Of a DNA stretch of 64,000 nucleotides, positions 15,715-37,806 are shown in pieces. The translations under genes were made by a program, and so were the position numbers. The stretch lies in sequence record ON529852.1, one strand, 5' to 3'. The notes beneath the pieces were generated by a model. The model worked only from the letters and a program-made list of their open reading frames with translations, did not search any database and was not told the DNA's origin. The stretch's first letter is position 1, and each line of letters starts with the position of its first letter.

Positions 15715-16161
15715 TTAGCCCGCTCCCGTAACCATGGTTACAATGGCGCCGACGACCGCCGCCAGCAGGGCCGAGCCCCCGGCGGTCAACGGACCGATGA
15801 TGATCTCCATCCGCGTCAGGCGCTTTTCCAGCGCCAGCTTGTCGGCGGTGAACTCACGCTCCAGGCGGTCCAGTTCGTCCGCCGCCTCTTTTTCGACGCG
15901 GGCCGTTTCCTGGGCGGCGGCCTTGAGGTCGCGTTCCAGGTTGGCGATTTTCTGCGGCTGATCCTGAGCCTCGATGCGCGTCAGGCGATCGCGCACGTCC
16001 TTCATGTCTTCGCGGAATCCGTCGAAACGGGTGTCGACCTTGTCGACAAGCCGATCCATCTTGTCGTTGAGCGTCGTGAAGAGACGGTCCACGGCGTCGC
16101 GGAACCGGTCTTCGGGCGTCATGCCCACGGCCGGAATGGGAATGTTACCGGCCATCGACAT
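15715..16161 (-). CDS. Coiled-coil protein with C-terminal transmembrane anchor
   Basis: Heptad-rich body, then IIIGPLTAGGSALLAAVVGAIVTMV; the true start may be slightly downstream. Confidence 0.7.
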   Translation of the reverse strand: MSMAGNIPIPAVGMTPEDRFRDAVDRLFTTLNDKMDRLVDKVDTRFDGFREDMKDVRDRLTRIEAQDQPQKIANLERDLKAAAQETARVEKEAADELDRLEREFTADKLALEKRLTRMEIIIGPLTAGGSALLAAVVGAIVTMVTGAG

Positions 16162-16645
16162 AGACCTCCTCGATCTGAGCGATGCCGCACACCGCGACCA
16201 CGTCCCCGTTCACCATGATGGGCCACTTCCACCCCGCGAAGCGCAGCAGAGCGCCGCTGGAGGCATGCGGAATGACGCCGTCGACCTGGATCGTGCGGCG
16301 CTCGATGACGCATTGGAGGTCTTCGTCCTCAAAGGCGCTGGCGTCGCCGTTGTCCCAGATGGCGTGATCCGGCTGCGCCAGGTAGTCGAGCGCGGTCACG
16401 CCCGTCATGGCGGTATAGGGTCGGTTGACGTGAACCATCACGAACGATCCGTCCGCTTGCAAGGCCTTGATCCAGGCCGGCAGGGGCATGTGTTCGAAGA
16501 AGCCCGTCATCAGGAGGCAAGGGTCCTCCGAACGGCACTCTTCGGCGGCGTCACGCAAAATGTTGAGCAGGGCTTCCACGTCTTGACGCGGTTTCTGCGG
16601 GATACCCGTCGGTTGGGCCGAAGGGCTGCTGTCGTTGTTCGACAC
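16145..16645 (-). CDS. Stand-alone PAS-domain protein
   Basis: FFEHMP.PAWIK....F.MV.VN..Y....G......L...D..IW....A..F..ED..C.......G....WKWPI...G.VVAVCGIA (PAS_4 pattern). Confidence 0.75.
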   Translation of the reverse strand: MSNNDSSPSAQPTGIPQKPRQDVEALLNILRDAAEECRSEDPCLLMTGFFEHMPLPAWIKALQADGSFVMVHVNRPYTAMTGVTALDYLAQPDHAIWDNGDASAFEDEDLQCVIERRTIQVDGVIPHASSGALLRFAGWKWPIMVNGDVVAVCGIAQIEEVYVDGR

Positions 16646-16710
16646 GGCCTTCGTCCCCGACGGTTAGCGCGTTGATATTGACGCGGAGGCTACGCGCAAA
16701 CCCCTTGAAA

Positions 16711-16736
16711 GTCAAGATTTTTGGCAACGATTGCCA
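16711..16736 (-). promoter_or_regulatory. Late-promoter motif copy 3
   Basis: GGCAATCGTTGCCAAAAATCTTGACT-17-TAGCCT. Confidence 0.65.
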
Positions 16737-16875
16737 GCCAATAAATTCCTTGACGAAGCGCAGCGCCGGAATCACAACGCCCCGCACCGGACGGGGGCCA
16801 GTGCGGGGCGCTGCTTGACGACGGAGGACCGCGTCAGCCGGACAAAGCCCCGTGGCTGACTGCGACGCTGTGCGG

Positions 16876-16904
16876 GATGTAGAGGACTGCGCGGTGCGTG
16901 TCAA
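16876..16904 (-). promoter_or_regulatory. sigma70-type promoter
   Basis: TTGACA-16-CTACATC, matching Caulobacter TTGAC..GCTANAWC. Confidence 0.6.
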
Positions 16905-16921
16905 CCCTCTCGGTCAGATAA

Positions 16922-17002
16922 TGGCGGGGACGGAGGGAATCGAACCCCCTGGATGACGCCTTCGGAGGGCGTTGCCTACATTCCGGTCGGCACTTCGCCC
17001 CC
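16922..17002 (-). tRNA. tRNA-Arg(CCG), atypical D arm
   Basis: GGGGGCG/CGTCCCC acceptor, ACGCC-CTCCGAA-GGCGT, GGTTCGATTCC, CCA. Confidence 0.8.
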
Positions 17003-17035
17003 GAGGCGGTGGGCCGGACAGGCCGGCAGAAAGAG

Positions 17036-17117
17036 TGGCGCCCAAGGCAGGATTTGAACCTGCGTTTGCAACTCCGCTACGGATAAGGCCTTCGTAGGAC
17101 CCCTCGGTTACTTGGGC
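17036..17117 (-). tRNA. tRNA-Arg(ACG)-like, no D stem, branched variable region
   Basis: GCCCAAG/CTTGGGC acceptor, GGGTC-CTACGAA-GGCCT, T arm GCAGG-TTCAAAT-CCTGC, CCA. Confidence 0.6.
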
Positions 17118-17120
17118 ATT

Positions 17121-17204
17121 TGGCTCCTATGAGAGGACTCGAACCTCTAAGTCTTGCGACGGTCGATTAACAGTCGACTGCGTTTACCATTCCGCCACAT
17201 AGGA
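17121..17204 (-). tRNA. tRNA-Asn(GTT) with long variable arm
   Basis: GTCGA-CTGTTAA-TCGAC; variable hairpin GTC-GCAA-GAC; CCA. Confidence 0.9.
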
Positions 17205-17229
17205 ACAAACTGAATACTGATATTTTACC

Positions 17230-17303
17230 TGGTTCTGGCTCTAGGAATCGAACCTAAATCTCGGAGACCAAAACTCCGCGTGATACCGTTACACTAAGCC
17301 AGA
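17230..17303 (-). tRNA. tRNA-Gln(TTG)
   Basis: CGGAG-TTTTGGT-CTCCG; full cloverleaf; CCA. Confidence 0.9.
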
Positions 17304-17314
17304 TCAGGAAAACT

Positions 17315-17392
17315 TGGTAGGAGGTACTGGATTCGAACCAGTGAAATGTCGGTATGTGAAACCGATGCCTTGGGCCGCTTGGCGAACCTCCC
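17315..17392 (-). tRNA. tRNA-Val(CAC)
   Basis: TCGGT-TTCACAT-ACCGA; G1.U72; CCA. Confidence 0.85.
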
Positions 17393-17436
17393 ATGCAAGA
17401 GCAGCGTATCTCCACCGCTCAGGGACAAAGTAAAGT

Positions 17437-17513
17437 TGGTCCTAGCACCAGGATTTGAACCTGGGACCGAGCGGTTATCGACCGCGCGCTCTACCAAACT
17501 GAGCTATGCTAGG
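17437..17513 (-). tRNA. tRNA-Ile(GAT)
   Basis: GCGG-TCGATAA-CCGC (C33); CCA. Confidence 0.9.
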
Positions 17514-17517
17514 GCTG

Positions 17518-17592
17518 TGGTAGCGGATACAGGAATCGCACCTGTGCATGTCGGCGTGTCATACCGATGCCTTTCTACTTGGCTAATCCGCC
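17518..17592 (-). tRNA. tRNA-Val(GAC)
   Basis: TCGGT-ATGACAC-GCCGA; T loop TGCGATT; CCA. Confidence 0.85.
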
Positions 17593-17605
17593 ACACAGAA
17601 AAGTG

Positions 17606-17680
17606 TGGCCCACCCAGGAGCGCTCGCATCTCCGTCTCGGGGATTTCACTCCCGCGCTAATCTGTCTCAGCTATGAGTGG
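17606..17680 (-). tRNA. tRNA-Phe(GAA), divergent
   Basis: CGGGA-GTGAAAT-CCCCG; weak T arm; CCA. Confidence 0.7.
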
Positions 17681-17681
17681 G

Positions 17682-17765
17682 TGGTGGGAAGGGAGAGAAT
17701 TCGCACTCTCACAGCTTGCGCGGGGGATTTACAGTCCCTTGGGCTCACTCGTGCCCAGCCTGCCC
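17682..17765 (-). tRNA. tRNA-Tyr(GTA)
   Basis: AGGGA-CTGTAAA-TCCCC; class II variable arm; CCA. Confidence 0.9.
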
Positions 17766-17832
17766 AAAATGTTACGGCTCAGTCGCCGCCGGTCATGGTG
17801 ATCTCCTGGATCAGATGAAGGTGTTGAAACGG

Positions 17833-17868
17833 AAAAGGCCCGCCTGGCGGAAACCAGGCGGGCCTTCG
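17833..17868 (-). terminator. Intrinsic terminator (attenuator) upstream of tRNA array 1
   Basis: GAAGGCCCGCCTGG-TTTCCG-CCAGGCGGGCC followed by TTTT. Confidence 0.8.
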
Positions 17869-17897
17869 AAACTTGGGAGTTCTAAGTGGGTATCAGA

Positions 17898-17993
17898 TCA
17901 AATCTGCGTCCCACCATCGCCCATGCACGAATGGCCCGCCCGGTTAAACCGGACGACCTGAATTTGCTGCACGTTGTTGCGATAGGTGAACAT
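17898..17993 (-). CDS. Leader peptide 1, MFTYRNNVQQIQVVRFNRAGHSCMGDGGTQI (probably leaderless mRNA)
   Basis: ATG lies 7 nt after the -10 box; 16 of codons 2-18 are read by array-1 tRNAs. Confidence 0.8.
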   Translation of the reverse strand: MFTYRNNVQQIQVVRFNRAGHSCMGDGGTQI

Positions 17994-18000
17994 GAGAAGA

Positions 18001-18029
18001 CGTTTACTACAGGCGGCGACCAGTGTCAA
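18001..18029 (-). promoter_or_regulatory. Promoter of leader 1 / tRNA array 1
   Basis: TTGACA-17-TAAACG. Confidence 0.6.
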
Positions 18030-18031
18030 CA

Positions 18032-18247
18032 TTATTGTCGCCGATGGACCCAAGTTTTTTCGAGGGCGCTGTCCCAGGTCCCCCAGTTGCAGGGGTCAGG
18101 GTAGTCCCGATAGCGCCAGCCGCCGCAATAGCGGCACATGGCTTCAGTCTGATGGGCCTCGGCGGGGTGCGGTTCACAGTCCCCCGAGACGTCGCACAGC
18201 GGCCAGCCGTCGGGTCCCAGGGTAGGATCGTCGTCCGGGTCCGTCAC
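18032..18247 (-). CDS. Small Cys-rich hypothetical protein (MTDPDDDP...)
   Basis: GTG start overlaps upstream TGA; CxxxxxC, CxxC motifs. Confidence 0.55.
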   Translation of the reverse strand: MTDPDDDPTLGPDGWPLCDVSGDCEPHPAEAHQTEAMCRYCGGWRYRDYPDPCNWGTWDSALEKTWVHRRQ

Positions 18248-18552
18248 AGAGTGTAGTCGACCGCCGGGTCGGGCATCCAGACCTCTTCCAGCATGTGCAT
18301 CTGCGGGCGTGGCTGCCACTGGGCTTCGTGGTTCCAGGACAGGATCACGCCGGACCGCGTTTCGCTGCCGTCGGTCAGCGTCGCGCAGCCGTAGACATCA
18401 AAGGGCGGCGCGCCATCATAGGAATGGTGGCGCAAGGTATAGAGATGGGGACCGTTGCCGCCGCACCAGCGCACCAGAACTTTCGCTCCGTCGGGGAGGG
18501 CGCGGATTTCGGCCGGGGTCAGCCTGGGGGTGTCGGGGACGGCGTGGGTCAT
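18244..18552 (-). CDS. Hypothetical protein (102 aa)
   Basis: Translationally coupled ORF. Confidence 0.65.
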   Translation of the reverse strand: MTHAVPDTPRLTPAEIRALPDGAKVLVRWCGGNGPHLYTLRHHSYDGAPPFDVYGCATLTDGSETRSGVILSWNHEAQWQPRPQMHMLEEVWMPDPAVDYTL

Positions 18553-18815
18553 CAGGCGCGGTTCGGCGGCGTATACGGCATGGGGCGCAGCCGAGGCTCG
18601 GCGCGCGGATGACTGATTCCGGTCGGCATGATGTTCAATTGCAGCCCGGCGCCCCGACGCAGCAGCATCATGAGATCATGGGCGCGCACCGCCTCGGCCG
18701 GCGCGGCGAATGTCAGTTCGATCAGCACGCGATTGCTGTCGGTGCTGCACGCGGTCGCGATCTGGTCAGGCTCCAGGTCCAGAGCCTGCGTGGGACTGAT
18801 GTTGAGCCGGCTCAT
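18552..18815 (-). CDS. Hypothetical protein (87 aa, MSRLNISP...)
   Basis: ATGA overlap with def stop; only the 3' part of the listed 316-aa ORF is plausible. Confidence 0.6.
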   Translation of the reverse strand: MSRLNISPTQALDLEPDQIATACSTDSNRVLIELTFAAPAEAVRAHDLMMLLRRGAGLQLNIMPTGISHPRAEPRLRPMPYTPPNRA

Positions 18816-19354
18816 GCGCGTGTCATCCGACGCACGTTGTCCTGGTGCTTCTTCAGCAGCATCGCCCGCTTCAGCGACGAGACCCGGTCGATGTTGCGCA
18901 CCCCGTCCAGGTGGTCCATCTCGTGCTGAAGGCAGATGGCCTTGTAACCCTTGCCCGACACGGTCTGCATACGGCCGTGAATGTCCTGGTATTCGACCGT
19001 CACTTCCCGATGCCGTCGCACGCGGAAAAAGACGCCCGGCATGGACAGGCATCCCTCCGGCATCTCGATCATGTCCTCGGACTTGTCGATGAACGTGGGG
19101 TTGATCAGGATCAGTTTGGGGCGATCGACCATGACGTCTTGCACCGGCAGTCCGGTGTCGGGCAGGTCGATCATGGTGAAGATGCGCAAGGGCACGCCGA
19201 CCTGAACGGCGGCGAGCCCCGCGCCCTCGGCCATCAACATGGTGTCGACCATGTCGAAGCAAAGCGCCCGCACCTCGTCGGTGATCTCGAAGACCGTATC
19301 GGAGGGCTTCGTCATCAAGGCGTCGGTGCAGGGAATGATCTGACGCAGGGACAT
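18812..19354 (-). CDS. def: Peptide deformylase
   Basis: GAGLAAVQVG, EGCLS and HEMDH motifs. Confidence 0.97.
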   Translation of the reverse strand: MSLRQIIPCTDALMTKPSDTVFEITDEVRALCFDMVDTMLMAEGAGLAAVQVGVPLRIFTMIDLPDTGLPVQDVMVDRPKLILINPTFIDKSEDMIEMPEGCLSMPGVFFRVRRHREVTVEYQDIHGRMQTVSGKGYKAICLQHEMDHLDGVRNIDRVSSLKRAMLLKKHQDNVRRMTRA

Positions 19355-19587
19355 CAGGGCAGGCTCCCCAGGCCGCCGGCTGCGGACGCCCGCCCATCAC
19401 GCCAACGGCCGACGGCGCTGACCATTCGATCGGCCTGGTCCTCGACGTTTTCCAAGACGTCGATCGCCTGCATGAGCGCCATGCGCGCGTCTTCCAAGTC
19501 AAGGTCCTGGAGTTTGACGATGCGGCCCCGCACCACGACCTGATAGTCGTGGTACGGCGCCCGTTCGGCCGCGACGGAGTCGGACAT
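19354..19587 (-). CDS. Hypothetical protein (77 aa)
   Basis: Coupled ORF. Confidence 0.6.
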   Translation of the reverse strand: MSDSVAAERAPYHDYQVVVRGRIVKLQDLDLEDARMALMQAIDVLENVEDQADRMVSAVGRWRDGRASAAGGLGSLP

Positions 19588-19590
19588 GGG

Positions 19591-19884
19591 TCAGATTTCG
19601 CCGAGCGCGCTCAGGTACAGGTCCAGGATGGCGTCTTCTTCCTGGCGCTTGGCCTTGTCCTGCTTGCGCAGGCGCAGCACCTTACGCAGAATCTTCACGT
19701 CGTAGCCTTCGCCCTTGGCTTCGGCGAAGACTTCCTTCATGTCGACCATGACGGCCTGCTTGTCCTCTTCGAGGCGCTCCAGCCGCTCGATGATCGAGCG
19801 CAGGCGGCCCTGGGCGGAGGCGGTCAGGGCGTCGTCGGCCGACATGGCGTTGGCGGGCTCGACGCCGGGGGTGTTCTCGGACAT
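19591..19884 (-). CDS. gapR: GapR/DUF2312 nucleoid-associated protein
   Basis: LRSIIERLERLEEDK...MKEVFAEAKGEGYDVKILRKVLRLRKQD...EEDAILDLYLSALG. Confidence 0.95.
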   Translation of the reverse strand: MSENTPGVEPANAMSADDALTASAQGRLRSIIERLERLEEDKQAVMVDMKEVFAEAKGEGYDVKILRKVLRLRKQDKAKRQEEDAILDLYLSALGEI

Positions 19885-19909
19885 GGGTCTCTCGGGTTAG
19901 GTCGCCGGT

Positions 19910-20155
19910 TTATCCGGTGACGAGGTAACGAAGGACCGCGAGAAGTTCGCGGTCCGCATCAGGCTGTCGGGCCTTCTGGTCGATAAGGCGCAGGGCGGCG
20001 TTCTTTCGCGCCTGCTTCTTGGCGAGGGGGACGCCGAGCGTTCGCGCCAAGTCGCGCATCTCAGCCTCGTCCACATAGGCGCCAAGGGCGTCGCCGTAGC
20101 GACGGTTGGCGGGGTAGGTGGCGTAGTCCGGGGCCAGCGGCGGGAGGTCGCTCAT
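19910..20155 (-). CDS. Hypothetical protein (81 aa, MSDLPPL...)
   Basis: Coupled ORF. Confidence 0.55.
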   Translation of the reverse strand: MSDLPPLAPDYATYPANRRYGDALGAYVDEAEMRDLARTLGVPLAKKQARKNAALRLIDQKARQPDADRELLAVLRYLVTG

Positions 20156-20331
20156 CACATGTCTCCGCAAGGATCGTGCAGGGTGTCTCCCTGGTCGATG
20201 TCTTCGACGAAGGCGCCGTTCAGGAAGCGGCCCGTCGTGGTCTGGCCGTTGAGCCGCCGCACGACCCGCAACTGATGGTCCAGCCAGTAGTAGGGCACGC
20301 CCCACGCCTCGCGATAGACCGGCTCGGTCAC
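20155..20331 (-). CDS. Hypothetical protein (58 aa, MTEPVYREAWG..., absent from ORF track)
   Basis: GTGA and TGATG overlaps with both neighbours. Confidence 0.55.
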   Translation of the reverse strand: MTEPVYREAWGVPYYWLDHQLRVVRRLNGQTTTGRFLNGAFVEDIDQGDTLHDPCGDM

Positions 20332-20588: not shown

Positions 20589-20590
20589 GC

Positions 20591-21887: not shown

Positions 21888-21889
21888 CT

Positions 21890-24255: not shown

Positions 24256-24387
24256 TTACAGGAAACCTTCCAGGGAGACGCCACCGGTGGTGGGGGACTT
24301 CGTCGACAGTTTCGGCGCATGCGCGAGCGTCGACAGCGCCGTGGCGGCGGTCGAAAGCGGGCTCAGCTTGTGCGACAAGGTGGTCAC
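24256..24387 (-). CDS. Leader peptide 2, MTTLSHKLSPLSTAATALSTLAHAPKLSTKSPTTGGVSLEGFL
   Basis: GTG start; codons 2-34 are all T/L/S/H/K/P/A, exactly the amino acids of array-2 tRNAs. Confidence 0.82.
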   Translation of the reverse strand: MTTLSHKLSPLSTAATALSTLAHAPKLSTKSPTTGGVSLEGFL

Positions 24388-28136: not shown

Positions 28137-28762
28137 CAGAGGAACCGCAGGGAAACAACGTGGTGTTGAGGAATGGACGACCAGGGCGACATGGTCTGGA
28201 CATGCTCCACAATCAGGTTCGACGTCGTGGGCGTCGTCTCGATCGTATAATGCCCCGGCTCCAGCCAGCGGTCGAAACCTGGCTCCAGGGTCATGGCGCC
28301 GTTGATCGCGAAGTCGTGCGTTTCGAGCAGGAGCCCTTTCACATCGAACAGACGCGCAGTGAGCGTGCCCGTGCCGCCGTTGCTGCGCAGCCGCATCGCG
28401 ATCAGTCGAGCCGGCTCGGCCAGAGCGATCGTCGTCGTGCGGACAATGCCGCCGAAGGGCAGGAAGCCGACCGCCACCGGCGCGCAGCCCGGCAGCACCC
28501 AGACCTTGCGGTCCATGGGACGCCCGCCGCCGCCTGCCTGAAGCGGGCCATGCTCGACGCCTTCGGGCGTCATCAGGCGGACGTCGTCGCCCCCCAGGGC
28601 GCGTTCCGGCAGAAGCGGCACGCTCATGTCAAAGGAGTCCTGACCGACGCCCAGGATGCGCGCTTCTCGGTCAATCGTCAGTTCGCCCGGCGCGCGAGGC
28701 TCGACCGGGCTCACCTCGAACGGCGTGAGGTAGATGGTATCAGGCATCAGGCGGTCGCCCAC
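28136..28762 (-). CDS. Putative virion fibre accessory protein (about 203-208 aa)
   Basis: Coupled to both neighbours; similar C-terminal beta domain. Confidence 0.5.
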   Translation of the reverse strand: MGDRLMPDTIYLTPFEVSPVEPRAPGELTIDREARILGVGQDSFDMSVPLLPERALGGDDVRLMTPEGVEHGPLQAGGGGRPMDRKVWVLPGCAPVAVGFLPFGGIVRTTTIALAEPARLIAMRLRSNGGTGTLTARLFDVKGLLLETHDFAINGAMTLEPGFDRWLEPGHYTIETTPTTSNLIVEHVQTMSPWSSIPQHHVVSLRFL

Positions 28763-31700
28763 ACATAGGCCAGAGCCGACGCCTCGCGGGAGGTCGGCGT
28801 CGGCGCGTCCAACAAGGAGCCCGTATCGGGCGCGGCGGGATCACCCACCATCGTCATATCAGCGGCGAAGGCCGTCGGGCCGCGTCGGGCCGACAGCGTG
28901 GGAGCGGCGCCGGTGACGGCGATCATGGCGGCGTGCCACCCTGCTTCCAGCACCACGTCCTGGTCCACGGACTTCGGTCCGGTAGGTCCGGAGGCCGACA
29001 CCTGCACGCTCACGGCGACATCGCCGGGCATTTGAAGCGCCTGGTCCCAACGACAGACGCCGAACCGGATCGTGCCGGCCGACGCCGCAGTGATCGTGAC
29101 GCCGAAACGGGTGAACCGGGTCGTGCGCGGCAGGAAGAACGGACGATAGACCACCTTGCCGACGGGCGGCTGGTTGGCCGAAGCGTCCATGCCGAAGTCG
29201 GTCAGATAGCGATCGCCCGCGCGCGCCGGCAACAGCACCGGCGCATCGTAGACGGGGTCCGGCGCGCGCCAGGTTCCGTCCGCATAGAGGATGTCCCCAG
29301 GCTCGCCGCCCTCGGGAGCCACGCCGCCCAACGCGATACGGCCCAGGGGCCGCGCCTGCATGACGCCGTAACCGTCGGTCGCGAAGAGGAGACCATCCGT
29401 CTCGTTCAGCGCAATTTCCAGCGGCTCAAGCGCGATGGGGACATTGCCGCGCACCAGGGTGCGCTTGTAGCGGATGACCACGCCGCCCGACCCCGAGACG
29501 TGCACCCCGTCATCATCTTCGACATAGCCTTCGACCGGTTGGAGATAGACCGTCGGCAAGGGCGCCGACGCCGAGGTTCCGCCCGCGCCTTCCGATTCCG
29601 GCGGAGAGACGAGGATGACGGAATCACTCAGGTCGCCGTCGACGACCGCCGCCGTCAGTTCGGCGGCGAAACCGCGCGGCGGCGTCACGTAGATGCGGTC
29701 GAAGTAGTTGATGCGGACGGTGGCGCTGCGGCTGAACGAGGCCAGCGGCGTGCCGACCAGGATCAGACCGAGGTCGCGAGACACGCTCGCGGTCACTTCG
29801 ACCAGGGGGTCTCCGTTCATGCCGACCGCGATCGTGACGAGAGGACCGCCCTGAGGCCCCGCACTGACGATGGCGTTGGCCGCGCCCGTCGCGTCGCCCG
29901 TGGCGAAGGCGATCGTGATGTCGTTCTCGAACGGCTCGGTGGTGTAAGGAATGGGCAGTTCGCCCAACCCTGCCAGCGGCACGATCTGAACCGGCGCGCC
30001 GAAATCGCCGTCGGCCGTTTCATCGGGGCCGTTCAGGTCGCCCTGCGGCGCCTGGAGCGTAACCACGCCCAGGAACTGGCCGGGCTGAGGCGCCCAACCG
30101 GCGTCGCCCTCGGCGAAGCCTTCAGGCGCCGTCAGCGGGATGACGCTGTCGATCTCGCCGATCCACATGTCGGCGACGCCCATCTCGCCCTCAATCCCGG
30201 AGACACCGATGACCAGGGGATCGAACATCTCGAAGCCGTTGCCGAGAATGTAATTCATCGGCTGGAGCGTGACCGTCAGGGTCTGATCCAGCTTGAGATC
30301 GACGCCGGCCTCCAGGCCCACGGACGGCGGGAAGGGATAGGCGAGGTCCTCGCCGATCCCCGTCACCACCAGGGCGTCGTTCTGAGGCTGACCGCCCAGA
30401 TCACCCGAGACGTAGATGGTCGGCAAATAGGCGCCGATGCCGCCTGCGGCCTTGGCCTGCGGGTCCATCATCAGGATGGATTCGCCCAGGTCACCCGAAC
30501 CTTGAGCGCCCATGGCGATGGCGCCGACCGGCGGAACGACGGTGACGACCGGCAAGGAACCGACCGCGTCTCCGGCTTTCGACCCCTCGCCCGATCCCGA
30601 CGCCGAGGTCACCAGAACCGTGCCGATCTGCGTGACGTTGAACGTCACCGGGATGGACAGTTCACCCTCGAACACCGACAGAGCGGCCAGGCCAGGCCCG
30701 CCCGCCATGCCGGGCACGATGGCGAAGTTGGGCACCCCGCCCAGGCCGACGCCGGACTGATACACCGGATTGGTGGTCCCAGCAGGCGTGCCCGTCGCGG
30801 ACGTCTCCGTGACCCCCTCCAAGAGGAGGTCGCCCAGGAAGCCGGAGCCGCCGCCGGCTGATCCCGACGTCGATCCGCTGTTGAGCGCGCCGCCGCCGCC
30901 GCCGTAGTAGCCGCCGCCGCCGCCTGCGCCGGTCGCACCCACGCCGCTCGCACCCACGACGCTTTCGCTGCCGTCGATCTGGAACCCGTCGCCGCCGCGA
31001 AGATAGGCCCCGTTGCCGTTGCCGTTGGTGTTCGACGCGCCTACGCCGCCCGTTGACTGCGTGCCGCCCGTGCCCATGCCTTGCGCCGTGCCGACGCCGT
31101 TGCCGCCGGACAGGCCGCCACCGAAACCGCCGCGACGGGCCGCCGTCGCCGCCCCCGCGCCGCCTCCGCCGACGACCGCCACCAAGACGCCATTACGCCA
31201 GACGCGGGTCGAGCCGCCGCCCGCACCGCCGCCGTAGGTTCCCGGTCCGCCGCCGCCGCCGTCGGGCCAACCGCCCAGGCTGCCCGTGAAGTTGCCAGGC
31301 GAAGAGCCGCCTTGGCCCACTTCAATGCGAATGAGGTCGCCCGGCTGGAACATGACGACGCCGGTCAAGTGACCGCCCGCGCCGCCGATCGAGTCCTGGG
31401 CGATCGTGTTGGTGTAAAGCTGCGAGCCTGCGCCGCCGCCGCCCCACAGGTTCAGATTGACGCCGCCGCTGAAGGTGGTGATGAAATCACGGGGACCATA
31501 AACGTCACCCAGCAGCGAGAGCGCGCCTTCCGGCAACGGCGCGATCGATGCGCCGGGCGTAAAGTCGAGAACCGCCCGGCCGTCGCCGCCAGGAAGGATC
31601 GCCGCCTTCGTCGCCTGAACGCCGCCCACGCCCACGCCCGCCGCATAATCAGCGTCGCCCGTCGCCGGGGGATTGGCTCCGACGCCGCTCGCGAGGCGGT

Positions 31701-34700
31701 AGTTGAGCGCCAAGGGGCCGCCGTAGCTGGAACCGCCGCCGGCGCCCCCGGCCGAGGTCGCCGCCAGATTGGTGCCAGCGGCTCCGCCGTAATAGCCGCC
31801 GCCGCCGCCCGGACCTGCGTTAAGGCCTGCGGCCGTATCAGGGGTCGATCCATCCGGATAGCCCTGCCCGCCCGACAGATATGCGCCGGACGAAATCGAG
31901 CCCACCGCCCGCCCGCGCAGAAGCCCGCCACGATAATCTCGGCCGCCGTTGCCGACGGTGGTCGCCGGACCCGCGCCGGGAAGGCCGATACGACCGCCGG
32001 CCGCACCGCCGTCGCCCGGCACAGCAGCCGAATACCAGCTATTGGCTCCGCCGCCGCCGCCTGCGACGAGTTGCAGCACGCCGTTGATCCAGACCCGCGA
32101 GGAGCCGCCGCCCGAGCCCGCCAGGCTGGTGCCGGCGGCTTCATACTTGCCGCCCCGTCCGCCGTCGGGCCAGCCGCCAAGGCCAGAGACCGTATCCGTG
32201 GGCGCCGGGACGCCGCCGCCCGAGGCGACATCCACACGGACCACGTCGCCCGGCTTGACCAGGAACTCCGCGAGGCTGAAGGCGCCCGCACCGGCGACCG
32301 AGGGCGTGGTCACCGAGGGGCGAACGGCGGCGGAGCCGCCAGCGCCCCACAGCTTGACCTTGAGGAGACCGGCGGTGGTGACGTTGAACAGGCGTTCAGA
32401 ACGGTTCGAACCATACGCGGTCTTGCCGGTCGGCAGATCGACCGGAACCAGGTAGTTGAGGATCGCGAGACCGTCGCCGCCAGGCGCGGGGTTCTGCGCC
32501 AGCGTGGACGTTCCGGCGGAGCCCTGGGCCGTGCCCAGCACGAAGCCCGGCACGGCGGTTCCGCCCAGGCCGACGACGCTTTCGCCGTTGGCGGGCGTCA
32601 GGTGAGAGCCGCCCCCAGCCGAGCCGGCGGCCGTCGCCGCATTCAAGGAGGAGCCGCCGCCGCCGCCGTAGTAGCCGCCGCCGCCGCCCGGACCCATGCC
32701 CAGGCCGATGCCGTTAGAGCCGAGGCTGTATCGGGCGTTGCCGACGCCGAAGCCGTTGCCGCCCCGGAGGCTGGAGCCTGCGTAGGTGGTGTCGGTCGGA
32801 TAACCCGTGTTGACGCCGCCGGAGACCTGAGTGCCGCCGGTTCCGGGCTTCAGATTGGCGTTGCTCGCCGGTCCGCCGTCCGCGCCGCCGCCGGCGCCGC
32901 CAGCCACTGCGACACTGGAGCCGCCGCCACCGCCGCCACCGCCGCCGGCCACCATGACCAGGACGTCGTTCTTGTAAAGCCGCGTGGAGCCGCCGCCGCC
33001 GCCGTAACCCGTCAGGGCGGAGATGCGCGCGCCGTCGCCGCCGTCGGGCCAACCGCCTTGACCGCCGCCCGACGTCGCGAAGGGACGACCGCCTTGTCCG
33101 ACTTCAACCCGCAGCGTGTCGCCGGGCACGACTTCAATGGCGGCGCGCGTGTAGCCTCCGTCGCCGCCAGGGCGGAAGGTGCCGACCGTCGCGCCGGAGC
33201 CGGCGCCGCCCCACAGGTTGACGTTGACCGTCCCCTTCTGGGAGATGGTGATGGTCCGGGCCGTCGCCGTGTGGCCGAAGACGTTGTTGCCCAGAACCAG
33301 GGTCGTCGGCTGGAGCGGGATCGCCGCCGGGGTCTCATCAAAGCGGATGAAGACCTGACCATCGCCGCCCTCAGTCACCCAGGGCTGGGTCAGCGTCGCC
33401 GATGCGCTGGCCGGACGCGCAACGCCCGAGACGTATTCCGGCAGGTCCGCGCTGGGAGGGGTGAACCCGCTGCCGGCCGCATTGGTGCCGTTGAGCGGGG
33501 TCAGCGACGAGCCGCCGCCCGCACCGCCCGCACCCGTGACGGCGCCTGCGACCGTGTCGCAGCCGCCGGCTCCGCCGTAATAGCCGCCGCCGCCGCCGGG
33601 GCCGGTGCCCTCGCCGACCGAAGCGTTGGAGCCCCCGACCGGATAGCCGTGACCGCCCTTCAGGTAGTCGCCGGCGTAGGAGGCGTCCGTCGTGTAAAGC
33701 TTGTTGACGCCGCCCGCCGTCTGCGTGCCGCCGCCACCGACGGCGAAGTTGGCGTTGGAGGCCGGAGCACCATCCTGACCCGTCTCGCCGCCGCCTGCGC
33801 CGCCCTGGGCCGTATTGATGCCCGCGCCGCCCGCACCGCCGCCGGCGGCGACCGCCAGCAGACTGCTGTTGAGATAGACGCGGGTCGAGCCGCCGCCGCC
33901 GCCCCAACCGATCGCCGCCGAGCCCATGCCGCCGTTGCCGCCGTCGGGCCAGCCGCCCAGGCCGCCGGTCGTTGCCGTGGGGCCTCGACCGCCCTGCGCC
34001 ACCTGGAAGCTGAGCGTGTCGCCGGGCACGACGTCGCGCGTGAACGAGACCATGCCGGCCGCGCCGCCGTTGGCGAGCGTTCCCGTGCCCGCGACGCCGC
34101 CGGCGCCGCCGCCCCAGGCGCGGACCGTCACCTTGCCAGGCTTGGTGGCGACCCAGGTCTGATTGACGGCTCCGGCGTAAAGCAGGGTCCGTTCAGGTGC
34201 GACCGTTTGCTGCGCGACCAGTGCCAGGACCGCAAGACCATTGCCGCCGTGCGTCGTCGACGAGAGGTTGGACGTGCCGTTGCCGCTGGCCGCGACGCCG
34301 GCGACGTAGTCGGGGTCCGAAACGTTCGGAACGCCGTTGGAACCCGTGTTGTTCGCGGCTCCTGCCTCGGTTCCACCGGCCTTGCCGTTGTTCCAGCGCC
34401 GCGTGTAGCCGTCGTAGCCCGCATGGATGTAACTGGAGCCGCCGCCGGAGCCCGCGCCCGATCCACCCGAACCGCCGCCATAGTAACCGCCGCCGCCGCC
34501 GCCGCCGTTGCGCGTGTCCGCCGTGGTCCGGTTTTGCCCGACGCCGTATCCGTGACCGCCGCGCAGCAGGCCGCCCGTCGCGGCCGCATCACCGTAGCGA
34601 CCGACCGCATAGCCGCCCGCCGCCTGGGTGCCGCCCGCGCCGTAGTTGCTGCTGCCGCCGTGTTCGCCGTAGTAGTAGCCGCCGGAGCCGCTGAAGAAGG

Positions 34701-37700
34701 CGCCGCCGACGCCGCCGCCCGCACCAGCGACCGCGACCAGAACGTCGTTGACGTAGATGCGCGTCGAGCCGCCGCCGCCGCCACCGCAATAGGTCGAGGA
34801 GGCGTAGCCGCCGTCGCCGCCGTCGGGCCAGCCGCCGAGGCCGCCTTCGGTGGTCACCGACGGCTTGCGCCCGCCTTGCCCGACTTCAACCCGGACCGTG
34901 TCGTTGGCCTTGACGGGGATGGCGACATGCGTGAAGCCGCCCGCGCCCGCATAGCGCGTGCCGGAGTTGGCGTAGCCGCCGGCTCCGCCGCCGCCCCACA
35001 ACTTGGCCTCCAGAATGCTGTCGGCCGCGACCTTGTATTCAACCGGCGCGCCCCGGAAGGCGAGCGAAATCTTGGAGGGGAGTTCCGGCGTAGCGGCCGG
35101 AGGGCCGAGGTCGAGAACCGCGCGGCCGTTGCCGCCGGGCAGAGCCTGGTCAGTGGGTCCGCCCTGGACGGAGCCGGCCGCGACGCCCGTGACGTAGTCC
35201 GGGTCCAGCGCCCGAGGGGGGTTCTGGGCCAGGCCCATCTCGGTGACGCCGTTATCGACAGCCGGGTGCAGGAAGGACGAGCCGCCGCCCGCGCCGCTGG
35301 AGGTCGAGGACGCCAGGCCAGACGAACCGCCGCCGCCGTAGTAGCCGCCGCCGCCGCCCGCGCCGACGGTGCCCGAGGCGTTGGAGACTTCGACCGGCAC
35401 TGAGGTGCTGCCGCCCGAGCCGCCCCGGAGGTATCCGCCCGAAGAGACCGCATCAGCCCCCCGCGCCATGCAGACGCCGCCGGCCGTCTGTGATCCGCCC
35501 GTTCCACGCACGCCGCCGGCCTCATCGCCGTCGGCCCCCGTCAGGCCGCCGCCCGCGCCGCCGTAACCGCGCGAGGCGGTCGTATTCTCGTGGACGTTGC
35601 CGCCGCCGCCGCCGGCCGCGACCGCCACCAGGGCGCCGTTCTTGTAGATGCGCGTGGAGCCGCCGCCCGCGCCCGCAGACCGCGAGGTGGCGAAGAACCC
35701 GCCAGGGCCGCCATCAGGCCAGCCGCCGACCGACGGCCCGGAACCGATGGCCCCCGTGTTGGCGCCGCCCGCGCCGACTTCCACCGTCAGGATGTCGCCG
35801 GCCTTAAACCGAATCACGCCCGACACGAAGCCGCCAGGGCCGCCGTAACTCAGCGGTCGGGTAGCGACAATCGACGCCCCGGAGCCCCCGCCGCCCCACA
35901 GTTTGAACGCGAGGTCCGAGGTCTCGGTGACCTCGTAGGATTTGGCGAAGCCTTCAAAGGGCAGCACGAACTTGCCGCGCCCCACGGGGGTCGGCGGATC
36001 GATCGCCATGACGACCACGCGGCCGTCGCCGCCGGGGACGCCGACGCCGCGATTGCTGCCGAATGCGGCGCGACCGGCCGCCTTGCCGCCGCGATCCGAA
36101 TCCGAAGCCGCGCCAGGCGCGCCCGTCGTGATGACGCCCGTTTCCGTCAGGCCGTCGACCACGGAGGGATGAATATAGGAAGAGCCGCCGCCCGCGCCGC
36201 CGCCGGGGATGAAGGTGCCGGTGCTGGCGCTGCCCGAGCCGCCGTAGTAGCCGCCGCCGCCGCCCGCGCCGGAGTTGACGGAGTTCGAGGAAATCGTCTC
36301 CCCTACGGTCGAGTCGTAGCCGTCGCCGCCGCGTGCGCCGACGCCGTTGAACGCCGGTTTGAACGGGCTGACCCCAGGTCCGGTTTGCGAGCCGCCGATG
36401 CCGCGATAGGAATCGTTGGTGTAGTCAAGCGTGGCGTTGTTGGCTGCGTAGCCGTTCTGCCCGATCAGCCCGCCGCCGGGGCCGCCGTAGCCGCCGCTGG
36501 CGTAGCCCATGCCGGAGCCGCCGCCGCCGCCCGCGACCAGCATGATGACGCCGTTGACCTTGACGATCGTCGCGCCGCCGCCGCCGCCGAGTTGCCCGAC
36601 GGTGAAATACTTGGCGCCGTTGCCGCCGTTCGGCCAGCCGCCAAAGCCGCCGCGCTCGGAACCGGTGCGGCCGTCGCCACCCTGCCCGCCCTGGGCGACG
36701 GAAATCTCGACCAGGTCGCCCGTGACAAGCGCGATCTTACCACGCACGAAGCCGCCGCCGCCCGACGCGCCGCCGAGCGCTGCGCTGCCGTCCGAACGGT
36801 GAGCCGGCGCACCGGCGCCGCCCCAGGCCTTGATGTCGAGCGTGGTGTTGCGGTCCGCCACGAAGGACTTGACCGCGCCCGTGAAGTCCAGGGTGGTCTT
36901 GCCCGGCGGAATCGGCGGGATGACCACGGCCGCGATGGTGAGCACCGCCAGGCCGTTGCCGCCAGGCAGCGCCATGACGCCCGTCGAGCCGTTGTCCGCG
37001 CCAACGGCGACGCCCGCGACGTAATCCGCATCATCCGTCTTGGGCGCAGTCTTGCCCGCGCCGGCGACGTTGAGCGGGGTCGCGACCGTCGCGTGGAGGA
37101 AGGATGAGCCGCCCCCGGCGCCCGAGGACAGGTTGGTGGTCCACTGACCGGCGCCGGCGCCGCCGCCATAGTAGCCGCCGCCGCCGCCGCCGCCGTTGCG
37201 GTTGTCGGCGTTGGCGACGAATCCGGAGCCGCCGCGCAGAGAACCGCCCTGCTTGGCGGGCATATTGCTGGGATTGGAGAAGCCGCCGGCCGACTGCGTG
37301 CCGCCAAGGCCGGCCCAACCCGCCTGGCCGAAGCCGTCTTGACCCACGAGGCCGCCGCCAGCGCCGGAGTAACCCAGGGCCACCGTCGTGCCGGTCTCGT
37401 TGTGGTTGGCCCCGCCGCCGCCGCCCGCAACCGCGACGAGGACATTGTTCACATAGAGGCGCGTGGAGCCGCCGCCGCCGCCTGCGGCGCGAATAGTGAA
37501 AGCGTATCCGCCCACGCCGCCGTCGGGCCAACCGCCGGGGGAGACCGCAGCGCCCGTGAGAGGATCAGTCCGCCCGCCGCCGCCGACTTCGATCTTGATC
37601 GTGTCGCCCGCCGCCACCACGACCTCGCCCGACACAAAGCCGCCGGCGCCGCCGTAGCCGACGCGAGGCGCGATGTTGGAGGCGTTGGAGCCGCCGCCGG

Positions 37701-37806
37701 CGCCGCCCCACAGCTTGAACGACAGGGCTCCGCCCGTGGCGATCGTGTAGGTCTGCGCCACGCCCGAGTAGGGATGCGAAGACTTACCGGAGGGGAGATC
37801 AGCCAT
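28747..37806 (-). CDS. Giant glycine-rich virion protein: 8 tandem ALK/LTK-type GRD modules, Pro/Val/Gly-rich stalk, C-terminal anchor
   Basis: 8 copies each of GGWP(D/N)GG and GGGGGYYGG, each module opening with (L/A)WGG(A/G)G-like motifs; ~295-aa period. Confidence 0.85.
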   Translation of the reverse strand: MADLPSGKSSHPYSGVAQTYTIATGGALSFKLWGGAGGGSNASNIAPRVGYGGAGGFVSGEVVVAAGDTIKIEVGGGGRTDPLTGAAVSPGGWPDGGVGGYAFTIRAAGGGGGSTRLYVNNVLVAVAGGGGGANHNETGTTVALGYSGAGGGLVGQDGFGQAGWAGLGGTQSAGGFSNPSNMPAKQGGSLRGGSGFVANADNRNGGGGGGGYYGGGAGAGQWTTNLSSGAGGGSSFLHATVATPLNVAGAGKTAPKTDDADYVAGVAVGADNGSTGVMALPGGNGLAVLTIAAVVIPPIPPGKTTLDFTGAVKSFVADRNTTLDIKAWGGAGAPAHRSDGSAALGGASGGGGFVRGKIALVTGDLVEISVAQGGQGGDGRTGSERGGFGGWPNGGNGAKYFTVGQLGGGGGATIVKVNGVIMLVAGGGGGSGMGYASGGYGGPGGGLIGQNGYAANNATLDYTNDSYRGIGGSQTGPGVSPFKPAFNGVGARGGDGYDSTVGETISSNSVNSGAGGGGGYYGGSGSASTGTFIPGGGAGGGSSYIHPSVVDGLTETGVITTGAPGAASDSDRGGKAAGRAAFGSNRGVGVPGGDGRVVVMAIDPPTPVGRGKFVLPFEGFAKSYEVTETSDLAFKLWGGGGSGASIVATRPLSYGGPGGFVSGVIRFKAGDILTVEVGAGGANTGAIGSGPSVGGWPDGGPGGFFATSRSAGAGGGSTRIYKNGALVAVAAGGGGGNVHENTTASRGYGGAGGGLTGADGDEAGGVRGTGGSQTAGGVCMARGADAVSSGGYLRGGSGGSTSVPVEVSNASGTVGAGGGGGYYGGGGSSGLASSTSSGAGGGSSFLHPAVDNGVTEMGLAQNPPRALDPDYVTGVAAGSVQGGPTDQALPGGNGRAVLDLGPPAATPELPSKISLAFRGAPVEYKVAADSILEAKLWGGGGAGGYANSGTRYAGAGGFTHVAIPVKANDTVRVEVGQGGRKPSVTTEGGLGGWPDGGDGGYASSTYCGGGGGGSTRIYVNDVLVAVAGAGGGVGGAFFSGSGGYYYGEHGGSSNYGAGGTQAAGGYAVGRYGDAAATGGLLRGGHGYGVGQNRTTADTRNGGGGGGGYYGGGSGGSGAGSGGGSSYIHAGYDGYTRRWNNGKAGGTEAGAANNTGSNGVPNVSDPDYVAGVAASGNGTSNLSSTTHGGNGLAVLALVAQQTVAPERTLLYAGAVNQTWVATKPGKVTVRAWGGGAGGVAGTGTLANGGAAGMVSFTRDVVPGDTLSFQVAQGGRGPTATTGGLGGWPDGGNGGMGSAAIGWGGGGGSTRVYLNSSLLAVAAGGGAGGAGINTAQGGAGGGETGQDGAPASNANFAVGGGGTQTAGGVNKLYTTDASYAGDYLKGGHGYPVGGSNASVGEGTGPGGGGGYYGGAGGCDTVAGAVTGAGGAGGGSSLTPLNGTNAAGSGFTPPSADLPEYVSGVARPASASATLTQPWVTEGGDGQVFIRFDETPAAIPLQPTTLVLGNNVFGHTATARTITISQKGTVNVNLWGGAGSGATVGTFRPGGDGGYTRAAIEVVPGDTLRVEVGQGGRPFATSGGGQGGWPDGGDGARISALTGYGGGGGSTRLYKNDVLVMVAGGGGGGGGGSSVAVAGGAGGGADGGPASNANLKPGTGGTQVSGGVNTGYPTDTTYAGSSLRGGNGFGVGNARYSLGSNGIGLGMGPGGGGGYYGGGGGSSLNAATAAGSAGGGSHLTPANGESVVGLGGTAVPGFVLGTAQGSAGTSTLAQNPAPGGDGLAILNYLVPVDLPTGKTAYGSNRSERLFNVTTAGLLKVKLWGAGGSAAVRPSVTTPSVAGAGAFSLAEFLVKPGDVVRVDVASGGGVPAPTDTVSGLGGWPDGGRGGKYEAAGTSLAGSGGGSSRVWINGVLQLVAGGGGGANSWYSAAVPGDGGAAGGRIGLPGAGPATTVGNGGRDYRGGLLRGRAVGSISSGAYLSGGQGYPDGSTPDTAAGLNAGPGGGGGYYGGAAGTNLAATSAGGAGGGSSYGGPLALNYRLASGVGANPPATGDADYAAGVGVGGVQATKAAILPGGDGRAVLDFTPGASIAPLPEGALSLLGDVYGPRDFITTFSGGVNLNLWGGGGAGSQLYTNTIAQDSIGGAGGHLTGVVMFQPGDLIRIEVGQGGSSPGNFTGSLGGWPDGGGGGPGTYGGGAGGGSTRVWRNGVLVAVVGGGGAGAATAARRGGFGGGLSGGNGVGTAQGMGTGGTQSTGGVGASNTNGNGNGAYLRGGDGFQIDGSESVVGASGVGATGAGGGGGYYGGGGGALNSGSTSGSAGGGSGFLGDLLLEGVTETSATGTPAGTTNPVYQSGVGLGGVPNFAIVPGMAGGPGLAALSVFEGELSIPVTFNVTQIGTVLVTSASGSGEGSKAGDAVGSLPVVTVVPPVGAIAMGAQGSGDLGESILMMDPQAKAAGGIGAYLPTIYVSGDLGGQPQNDALVVTGIGEDLAYPFPPSVGLEAGVDLKLDQTLTVTLQPMNYILGNGFEMFDPLVIGVSGIEGEMGVADMWIGEIDSVIPLTAPEGFAEGDAGWAPQPGQFLGVVTLQAPQGDLNGPDETADGDFGAPVQIVPLAGLGELPIPYTTEPFENDITIAFATGDATGAANAIVSAGPQGGPLVTIAVGMNGDPLVEVTASVSRDLGLILVGTPLASFSRSATVRINYFDRIYVTPPRGFAAELTAAVVDGDLSDSVILVSPPESEGAGGTSASAPLPTVYLQPVEGYVEDDDGVHVSGSGGVVIRYKRTLVRGNVPIALEPLEIALNETDGLLFATDGYGVMQARPLGRIALGGVAPEGGEPGDILYADGTWRAPDPVYDAPVLLPARAGDRYLTDFGMDASANQPPVGKVVYRPFFLPRTTRFTRFGVTITAASAGTIRFGVCRWDQALQMPGDVAVSVQVSASGPTGPKSVDQDVVLEAGWHAAMIAVTGAAPTLSARRGPTAFAADMTMVGDPAAPDTGSLLDAPTPTSREASALAYVWATA

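Follow-up and report, generated by a model that had tools for sequence, protein, structure and literature searches.

A Candidate Leader-Peptide Attenuator Preceding a Transfer RNA Array in the Brevundimonas Jumbo Phage vB_BpoS-Kabachok

Introduction

The Brevundimonas jumbo phage vB_BpoS-Kabachok (ON529852.1), a member of Dolichocephalovirinae with a genome of 356 kb, carries a block of nine transfer RNA (tRNA) genes, here called array 1, that is preceded by a short open reading frame (ORF) and an intrinsic terminator. The ORF, hereafter the leader, is written almost entirely in codons that the nine tRNAs read, and its RNA is predicted to switch between folds that end transcription before the array and a fold that lets it continue. 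This arrangement is most readily explained as a ribosome-mediated (leader-peptide) transcription attenuator that precedes a phage tRNA operon, a reading to which we assign a probability of about 0.75. The tRNAs of array 1 would then be made, probably, only when ribosomes struggle with the corresponding codons. The codons, the helices and their conservation are read directly from the genomes; from them we infer the transcription start site, translation of the leader, stall-dependent readthrough and the physiological signal.

The DNA analyzed is a stretch of 64,000 nucleotides (nt) of this record, referred to as the window; positions are those of the window, and adding 248000 gives the position in the record. 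All genes at the leader locus lie on the minus strand, where the leader is flanked by array 1 and by a small Cys-rich ORF located downstream of a peptide deformylase gene. An attenuator at this locus had been proposed earlier from the sequence of the window, and the elements of that original prediction are followed here through codon statistics, RNA folding and comparison with related phages.

A Leader Written in the Codons of Array 1

The leader encodes MFTYRNNVQQIQVVRFNRAGHSCMGDGGTQI* in 31 codons that end in TGA. Direct reading of the minus strand confirms the arrangement originally described, TTGACA-17-TAAACG-7-ATG followed by an ORF at 17993..17898. The first 18 codons are ATG TTC ACC TAT CGC AAC AAC GTG CAG CAA ATT CAG GTC GTC CGG TTT AAC CGG, and these are followed by GCG GGC CAT TCG TGC ATG GGC GAT GGT GGG ACG CAG ATT TGA. 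The codons that the array can decode, here the cognate set, are the 17 codons read by the nine anticodons under standard wobble rules. As had been noted, 16 of the 17 codons from position 2 to 18 belong to this set and all nine tRNAs are represented. The match is uninterrupted from codon 4 to codon 18 (15/15), and TTC at codon 2 is also cognate; when it is counted, the run uses all nine anticodons.

The cognate set makes up 28.7% of the codons in the likely genes of the window. At this background, the probability of at least 16 matches among 17 codons is 2.6e-8 and that of the uninterrupted 15-codon run is 7e-9. The match beyond chance thus stands, and the earlier estimate of about 4e-7 is revised to the stronger figure of 2.6e-8. 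A six-frame scan of about 92,600 stop-free 17-codon windows across the 64 kb returned just two loci with a score of 16. The other one, at 37225, lies out of frame in a 3019-aa ORF, where a run of Arg codons represents four tRNA classes against nine in the leader; it is not a leader and was rejected. The leader is therefore unique in the 64 kb and is also placed exactly where a leader is expected. The 3019-aa ORF itself (28747..37806, minus strand) consists of long Gly-rich repeats with GGGGYYGG motifs.

Several codons of the run are the minor members of their synonymous families (TAT 28%, ATT 12%, TTT 8%, CAA 19%). These minor codons, read by wobble, would raise the sensitivity of a stall sensor. 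In the record, the leader lies within a 44-aa hypothetical protein, KABACHOK_04190, annotated at 17898..18032. The upstream extension of this protein runs into an in-frame stop in the related phage Kikimora on reading by hand.

The Nine tRNAs of Array 1

With default settings ARAGORN calls five of the nine tRNAs, and the record likewise lists five. Rfam adds the two Arg tRNAs, each at 32 bits (matches at 16925-17002 and 17039-17117), which brings the total to seven; the Tyr and Phe-like tRNAs were undetected in the Rfam search. Relaxed ARAGORN returns all nine, in the order Tyr, Phe, Val(GAC), Ile, Val(CAC), Gln, Asn, Arg and Arg(CCG), and the annotations of related phages place Tyr, Arg(ACG), Arg(CCG) and Phe tRNAs at matching positions. 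By these two routes, the nine tRNAs named in the original prediction were recovered, including the unusual Val(CAC), which both ARAGORN and Rfam call.

The identity of the first Arg tRNA was likewise settled in favor of the earlier call. ARAGORN assigns it the anticodon CCT, which was rejected because aligned arrays show an ACG loop: in nine of 12 of them, the loop YTACGAA sits on a covarying stem, and the anticodon is therefore ACG. Three Bertelyviruses fail to align at this tRNA, and theirs is called or annotated as ACG. In this tRNA the D region is very short and the variable arm, which includes CCGTAGCGG, is long; most relatives share this architecture. Array alignment also led to the rejection of an ARAGORN call of Ile(aat) for the Asn tRNA of the phiCbK group. 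In Bambus, relaxed ARAGORN finds the Val anticodon TAC in place of CAC; the leader of this phage keeps GTG, which TAC can still read.

The Phe-like tRNA lacks the GG of the D loop and the TTCGA motif of the T loop and has a mismatch between positions 31 and 39. A comparison of Kabachok, Kikimora, CcrPW, Bajun and BL10 nevertheless shows covariation in both its acceptor stem and its anticodon stem. A canonical tRNA-Phe occupies the same position in phiCbK and Rogue; the Bertelyviruses have no Phe tRNA at this position and carry a canonical one at the end of the array instead.

Conservation of Codon Class Across Dolichocephalovirinae

The leader and terminator region is present in about 47 phage records that represent the Dolichocephalovirinae lineages in the collection, including phiCbK. 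Twelve orthologs were read and aligned (Kabachok, Bambus, Kikimora, CcrPW, Colossus, Bajun, CcrSC, CcrBL9, RB23, phiCbK, CcrBL10 and CcrRogue), covering Colossusvirus, Bertelyvirus, Shapirovirus and Poindextervirus as well as unassigned Brevundimonas phages; the counts below refer to these 12. All have an intact ORF of 31-32 codons that stops at the same place, and the only two indels within the ORF are each 3 nt long. In each phage, 13-15 consecutive codons from Tyr onward are cognate to its own array.

The pattern of substitution within the run is informative. Across its 15 columns, 24 alternative codon states occur; 21 of these lie within the cognate set, and 14 of the 21 change the amino acid. 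The exchanges within the set include non-conservative ones (V/R, N/F, N/Y/I/F, F/V/N) and a reordering of CGG-TTT-AAC-CGG to CGG-AAT-TTC-CGG. Since only 38% of the single-nucleotide neighbors of the set remain in it, 21 of 24 has a probability of about 1e-6 against a mutational-neighbor null of 0.384. Kabachok and Kikimora share about 70% identity in their matched DNA; between them, the ORF has seven replacements and no synonymous change in 26 alignable codons. In the Bertelyviruses, which lack the Arg(CCG) tRNA, Arg is encoded within the run by CGT, CGC and CGA. These comparisons of sequence indicate that the run is maintained by selection on codon class and not on peptide sequence.

Outside this group, little was found. 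A scan of IMG/VR with a pattern of segment 2 (the antiterminator strand described below) and the terminator returned seven known isolates and no new environmental relatives; two further matches were antisense collagen-like repeats and were discarded as false positives. The Sphingobium phage Lacusarx has tRNA-Tyr alone in common with array 1, and its array is organized differently.

Three Mutually Exclusive Helices

The leader RNA is predicted to form three mutually exclusive helices, designated 1:2, 2:3 and 3:4, each of which is supported by compensatory changes. In 11 of the 12 orthologs, the full-length minimum free energy (MFE) structure consists of helix 1:2, a hairpin that encloses the stop codon, and the terminator (3:4); the MFE structure of CcrSC differs. 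The core of helix 1:2 pairs codons 13-15 with segment 2, and in the Kabachok MFE structure the helix extends to 17984-17915. In the RNAalifold consensus, evaluated by pair counts, 91.7% of the alignment cells of helix 1:2 are paired and three pairs show compensatory changes. The terminator has a 15-bp stem followed by the tail TTTTCCGTTT, with a folding energy of -31.3 kcal/mol; 98.7% of its cells are paired, and again three pairs have changed in a compensatory manner. A pattern scanner finds the terminator core, and the phiCbK and Colossus records annotate a rho-independent terminator here. Taken jointly, helix 1:2 and the terminator have 95.7% of cells paired, and in seven pairs both partners have changed. 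Neither the pairing nor the covariation score was equalled in any of 500 shuffled alignments; slid controls gave 28-63%.

The alternative fold appears when the transcript is cut just before the 3' arm of the terminator. This was usable in 11 of the 12 orthologs, the cut in CcrSC being misplaced, and in 11 of 12 the MFE structure of the truncated transcript is the antiterminator 2:3, at -53 to -62 kcal/mol. Its cells are 88.2% paired, and five pairs show double-sided changes in 11 cells; none of 500 shuffles reaches the observed value, and slid controls give 30-54%. The competition between the helices can be followed along a chain of alignment columns, 44-58-139-157, in which column 58 pairs with 44 in helix 1:2 and with 139 in helix 2:3, and column 139 pairs with 157 in helix 3:4. 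Columns 58, 139 and 157 change together from G, C, G to A, U, A in CcrSC and BL9. Bajun has A, U, G at these columns, so that the antiterminator pair is retained and the terminator pair becomes a wobble; CcrPW is an exception in which a bulge is needed.

The pairing of 17941-17928 with 17868-17856 in the original prediction, given as 13 bp, proved to be real; it contains one bulged A and extends to 17 bp. The two-helix switch described there, an antiterminator competing with a terminator, also held, with the addition of the anti-antiterminator helix 1:2 that had been missed. The label of a textbook antiterminator applies only in part. In trpL, a ribosome at the stop codon masks segment 2 and prevents the antiterminator from forming. 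The Kabachok antiterminator is mutually exclusive with the terminator. The stop codon of the leader, however, is found 28 nt past segment 2, which makes the geometry unlike that of textbook trp. The stop codon falls instead in a hairpin of its own, and in the orthologs it likewise lies within a hairpin, the sequences of which differ.

A Conserved Candidate Promoter and a Presumably Leaderless Message

The promoter elements adjoin the start codon. In Kabachok, the 7-nt gap between TAAACG and the ATG at 17993 reads TCTTCTC on the minus strand. All 12 orthologs carry TTGAC unchanged at 30-31 nt from the ATG, while the spacer sequence diverges. The TA-rich, -10-like hexamers of the orthologs are TAAAAG, TAGACA, TATAAG, TAGGGT, TAGTTT and GACACA, always 7 nt before the ATG. 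These 7 nt are pyrimidine-rich in most of the orthologs, and a GGAG-like Shine-Dalgarno sequence is absent from them in all 12. No other TTGAC-type promoter was found between the terminator and tRNA-Tyr. The leader mRNA is presumably leaderless, with transcription predicted from the sequence to start at or near the A of the ATG.

A Second Leader Ahead of Array 2

A second ORF, leader 2, lies upstream of tRNA-Pro(CGG) at the head of another tRNA block, array 2. The tRNAs of array 2 are those for Pro, Thr, Lys, Leu, His, Ala and Ser, and leader 2 is composed of T, L, S, H, K, A and P. By hand count, 31 of its 33 codons are cognate to array 2, which against a background of 0.368 gives P = 8e-12; included in the count is a Thr(GGT) tRNA, assumed at about 23975-23900 from reading by eye and called by no tool. 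The runs of leader 1 and leader 2 contain no codon of each other's set, in agreement with the complementary amino-acid sets that had been proposed. Orthologs of leader 2 are annotated as hypothetical proteins (CbK_gp083, CcrBL10_gp078, CcrRogue_gp083 and BAJUN_02440), and in phiCbK, CcrBL10 and Bajun they use the same alphabet of seven amino acids in differing sequences. Unlike leader 1, leader 2 starts with GTG at a distance of 54 nt from its TTGACA-type promoter, and it folds into a complex structure with no clean three-helix picture; leader 2 is therefore used here for its codon composition and not for mechanism. By analogy with leader 1, it may do the same job for array 2 with a complementary codon subset.

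Array 2 has further oddities on the minus strand (22398-22724 and 23597-23975). Its Lys(CTT), Lys(TTT) and Thr(CGT) tRNAs are called by relaxed ARAGORN only, its Ser(TGA) tRNA scores like tRNA-Sec in Rfam, and a 130-nt element at 22584-22715 gives a partial match to transfer-messenger RNA at 32 bits. A third arrangement, TTGACA-17-TACAAG-6-ATG (25408-25515, minus strand), stands ahead of tRNA-Glu and tRNA-Asp. Its ORF, MTYRLTSYEREAFQGRDTTAA*, begins like leader 1 (M-T-Y-R) and contains only three Glu/Asp codons, and an obvious terminator is missing between it and the tRNA. A degenerate leader, or one of a different kind, may be represented here.

Proposed Mechanism

In the proposed mechanism, host RNA polymerase would start from the TTGACA promoter at or beside the A of the ATG, and with a start at the ATG the leader mRNA would have no 5' untranslated region and would be translated as a leaderless message. 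The ribosome would then meet 18 codons that are almost all read by the nine tRNAs encoded just downstream. The RNA could adopt either of two folds. In one, helix 1:2 together with terminator 3:4 would stop transcription ahead of the tRNAs; in the other, the 17-bp antiterminator 2:3 would consume the 5' arm of the terminator and polymerase would enter the array. With plentiful charged cognate tRNAs, the ribosome would pass, segment 2 would be covered and then recaptured by segment 1 behind the ribosome, the terminator would form, and the array would remain off. With slow decoding, the ribosome would stall on segment 1, segment 2 would be free, helix 2:3 would form and the tRNAs would be made. 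Without translation, helix 1:2 and the terminator would be expected as well. Because the switch would govern the very tRNAs that decode its control codons, it is most simply read as a negative feedback on decoding capacity for this part of the code.

Folding of the full-length Kabachok leader with a ribosome footprint masked out indicates where a stall would matter. With the leading edge of the mask at position 43-46, which corresponds to an A site at about codons 10-13, the MFE structure flips to the antiterminator. With the edge farther upstream, a local 1:2 hairpin and the terminator are favored, and a mask on codons 17-25 covers segment 2 and blocks 2:3. In this model, codons 10-13 are probably the most effective stall sites, not all 17. 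The attenuator interpretation as first put forward is thus upheld in silico in its elements, codon match and covariation, and the effective stall sites are probably narrowed from all 17 codons to these few.

Several observations weigh against the attenuator. A simple sigma-70 scanner calls no promoter at the leader, and the -10 element is weak by E. coli rules; the scanner misses it because TAAACG has no T at position 6, and with an empty scan the promoter is assigned from its conservation. A ribosome masked at the stop codon (17900-17898) leaves segment 2 uncovered in silico, so that termination in the absence of a stall would rely on the re-forming of 1:2 or on timing. Before the 3' arm of the terminator exists, 2:3 outcompetes 1:2 at equilibrium even without a ribosome, and the default state therefore hinges on folding kinetics. 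The structurally odd Phe-like tRNA may not decode. The codon match to the array, sound in Kabachok, is imperfect elsewhere: CcrPW and Colossus encode Arg(CCG), yet their runs have no CGG, and the Bertelyviruses retain one CGG without an Arg(CCG) tRNA. Some arrays also contain extra tRNAs, Arg(TCT) and Gly(TCC), that have no matching leader codon.

Alternative Explanations

The same switch could serve a different signal, namely amino-acid starvation or translation stress reported by uncharged tRNA, with no feedback on the products of the array. A stalled ribosome cannot tell a scarce tRNA from an uncharged one, and the seven amino acids covered by the leader resemble the multivalent ilv and thr leaders. 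The classical attenuators (the trp, his, phe, thr, ilv and leu leaders) all read tRNA charging, which also counts for starvation as the signal. We nevertheless regard this explanation as unlikely. The codon set follows anticodons and not amino acids alone, as the Arg codons of the Bertelyviruses illustrate; the run favors the minor codons TAT, ATT and TTT, which are read by G:U wobble; and the two leaders divide the code exactly as the two arrays do. Extra tRNA cannot relieve starvation, so the pairing of leader and product would then have no apparent purpose.

A switch independent of translation is very improbable; here the alternative helices of the leader RNA would respond to a bound protein, small molecule or tRNA, and the ORF would be incidental to it. 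Attenuators of the protein-controlled or riboswitch-like type are represented by TRAP, PyrR and the T-box, and the three helices alone would suffice for one. Such a switch does not account for an ORF that is intact with a fixed start and stop in 12/12 orthologs, for indels in multiples of three or for codon-class selection in the run, and no Rfam family, including T-box, matched at E <= 1. The least likely explanation is that the ORF encodes a small functional protein, that the hairpin ends the peptide deformylase operon, that the array is independent and that the codon match is a by-product. The 44-aa hypothetical protein of the record and a peptide recognizably conserved across genera speak for it. 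The codon match, at P of about 3e-8 and independently repeated at leader 2, speaks against it, as do substitutions that are non-conservative and yet stay inside the tRNA-defined set, the ratio of seven replacements to no synonymous change between Kabachok and Kikimora, and a C-terminal third that varies freely and tracks the hairpin. The start of the 44-aa frame is unconserved, and the protein has no Pfam or PHROG family. Moreover, the antiterminator covaries, and the conserved TTGAC promoter lies upstream of the terminator with no comparable motif between the terminator and tRNA-Tyr. The ribosome-mediated attenuator remains the preferred explanation.

Comparison with Known Systems

From its sequence, the Kabachok element has the structural features of leader-peptide attenuators, here applied to tRNA genes. 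Like the enterobacterial leaders trpL, hisL, pheL, thrL, leuL and ilvL, it has a short ORF rich in regulatory codons and overlapping helices 1:2, 2:3 and 3:4, the last an intrinsic terminator, in which a stall on segment 1 would free segment 2. The enterobacterial leaders regulate enzymes, whereas the Kabachok leader would regulate tRNAs. It also differs from them in its unbroken run of 15 codons, which covers seven amino acids and nine anticodons, in being apparently leaderless, in its location in a phage and in a stop codon placed far past segment 2 in its own hairpin. The closest system in logic is pheM/pheST of E. coli, which is autoregulatory and in which a component of translation is controlled through the decoding of its own cognate codons; there, however, the target is a synthetase, one amino acid is involved, the locus is chromosomal and the ribosome-binding site is conventional.

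T-box riboswitches similarly choose between terminator and antiterminator to report the state of specific tRNAs. They do so without translation, however, a specifier codon and the T-box sequence making direct contact with uncharged tRNA, and these features are absent here. The trpL leader of Sinorhizobium meliloti (rnTrpL/peTrpL) is a ribosome-dependent attenuator that regulates trpE(G) (PMC6614838, PMC7968998). It shares an alphaproteobacterial setting with the Kabachok leader, and roles in trans for the terminated leader RNA or peptide are possible in principle. As in the tRNA clusters of T4 and other large phages, array 1 is a block of phage tRNAs of the kind thought to supplement or replace host tRNAs; for those clusters, no dedicated sensing leader is described within the literature searched. 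That literature gave no account of attenuation of tRNA genes, in cells or phages, or of these leaders. In the phiCbK genome paper (PMC3556154), tRNAs and terminators are listed without a link between them, and no Tyr or Thr tRNA is said to be present.

Database searches also returned no family. A cmscan search of 16000-27500 at E <= 1 found no leader, T-box or riboswitch family, only matches of tRNA type and chance matches. Among the latter, ctRNA_pGA1 and Hrs10 over the terminator scored far below their Rfam gathering scores and were taken as chance. PHROGs has no family for either leader peptide. Pfam has none for the leader peptides; the 31-aa peptide gave a sub-threshold match to DUF1830 (E = 0.15, 12.5 bits against a cut-off of 25).

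Features of the Locus

The coordinates of the features are collected in Table 1.

Table 1. Features of leader 1, array 1 and leader 2 in window coordinates.
Feature	Position	Strand	Basis and remarks
-35 hexamer TTGACA	18024..18029	-	Direct reading; immediately 3' of the stop codon of the upstream gene
-10-like hexamer TAAACG	18001..18006	-	Direct reading; 17-nt spacer after TTGACA
Leader ORF (MFTYRNNVQQIQVVRFNRAGHSCMGDGGTQI*)	17898..17993	-	Direct reading; 31 codons + TGA; no Shine-Dalgarno sequence
Control-codon run, codons 4-18 (TAT to CGG)	17940..17984	-	15/15 cognate to array 1
Helix 1:2 core (anti-antiterminator), TCGTCCGGT/ACCGGGCGG	17956-17948/17944-17936	-	MFE, RNAalifold; 9 bp, 3-nt loop
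Segment 2, antiterminator strand AACCGGGCGGGCC-A-TTCG	17928..17945	-	Pairs with 17869-17852, 17 bp
Hairpin enclosing the stop codon (GGTGGG..CAGAT-TTG-ATCTG..CCCACT)	17885..17915	-	MFE, full-length and truncated
Intrinsic terminator	17826..17867	-	5' arm 17867-17853, loop 17852-17849, 3' arm 17848-17834, T-tract to 17826
tRNA-Tyr(GTA), long variable arm	17682..17765	-	Relaxed ARAGORN; same-place tRNA-Tyr annotation in Kikimora, Gurke and Bajun
tRNA-Phe(GAA)-like, non-canonical D and T loops	17606..17680	-	Relaxed ARAGORN; ortholog stem covariation
tRNA-Val(GAC)	17518..17592	-	ARAGORN and Rfam
tRNA-Ile(GAT)	17437..17513	-	ARAGORN and Rfam
tRNA-Val(CAC)	17315..17392	-	ARAGORN and Rfam
tRNA-Gln(TTG)	17230..17303	-	ARAGORN and Rfam
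tRNA-Asn(GTT)	17121..17204	-	ARAGORN and Rfam
tRNA-Arg(ACG), unusual architecture	17036..17117	-	Rfam 32.1 bits; relaxed ARAGORN; CcrPW annotation
tRNA-Arg(CCG)	16922..16999	-	Rfam 32.1 bits; relaxed ARAGORN; annotated Arg(CCG) in CcrPW
Leader 2 ORF, (V)TTLSHKLSPLSTAATALSTLAHAPKLSTKSPTT..	24256..24387	-	Upstream of tRNA-Pro(CGG); terminator follows, ~24190-24150

The small ORF upstream of the leader (18030-18244, minus strand) has a TAA stop overlapping the start codon of the annotated 44-aa ORF (TAATG). It has a conserved Cys-rich motif (C..C...CRYCGGWRYRDYP) that is found in Kikimora too. On the other side, past the terminator and before tRNA-Tyr, lies a mini-ORF on the minus strand with the canonical Shine-Dalgarno sequence AGGAGA (17807-17802) and the codons ATG ACC GGC GGC GAC TGA (17796-17779, MTGGD*), which would occur on readthrough transcripts only. 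Kikimora has a Shine-Dalgarno sequence and MTGGD*; CcrPW, Colossus, BL10 and Rogue have MNNGG*; and RB23 has MTGN* without a canonical Shine-Dalgarno sequence. In CcrSC and BL9 a longer ORF extends into the tRNA, and phiCbK and Bajun have no ATG.

Implications for Phage tRNA Arrays

Leader-peptide attenuation is an old principle, known from amino-acid biosynthesis and a few synthetase operons, and within the literature searched tRNA genes are a new target for it. For the annotation of these genomes, KABACHOK_04190, CbK_gp083 and their relatives are better read as leader peptides, and the arrays hold tRNAs (Tyr, Phe-like, Arg and others) that the record and default finders miss or miscall. The element is conserved in phiCbK, a phage of the genetically tractable Caulobacter crescentus, and is therefore directly testable, with the two complementary leaders of a single genome as built-in specificity controls.

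Current explanations for the presence of tRNAs in phages include compensation for codon usage, replacement of decaying host tRNAs and escape from tRNA-targeting defenses. A broader view, which we put forward tentatively and hold to be possible but somewhat short of probable, is that Dolichocephalovirinae possess a modular sensor of decoding capacity, in which the code is split among attenuated arrays, each gated by a leaderless mini-gene made of its own codons, gauging by ribosome speed whether the infected cell can still decode its share of the code, and turned on only when that share fails. The trigger of such a sensor could be decay of host tRNAs after shut-off, a mismatch in codon usage or cleavage by a host anticodon nuclease. 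On this view, leader-peptide attenuation would be recognized for the first time in a tRNA operon, whatever the organism, and the leaders would offer a direct read-out of why phages carry tRNAs. If the attenuator reading is true, phage tRNA arrays would be feedback-controlled by the reading of their own codons and would not be constitutive supplements.

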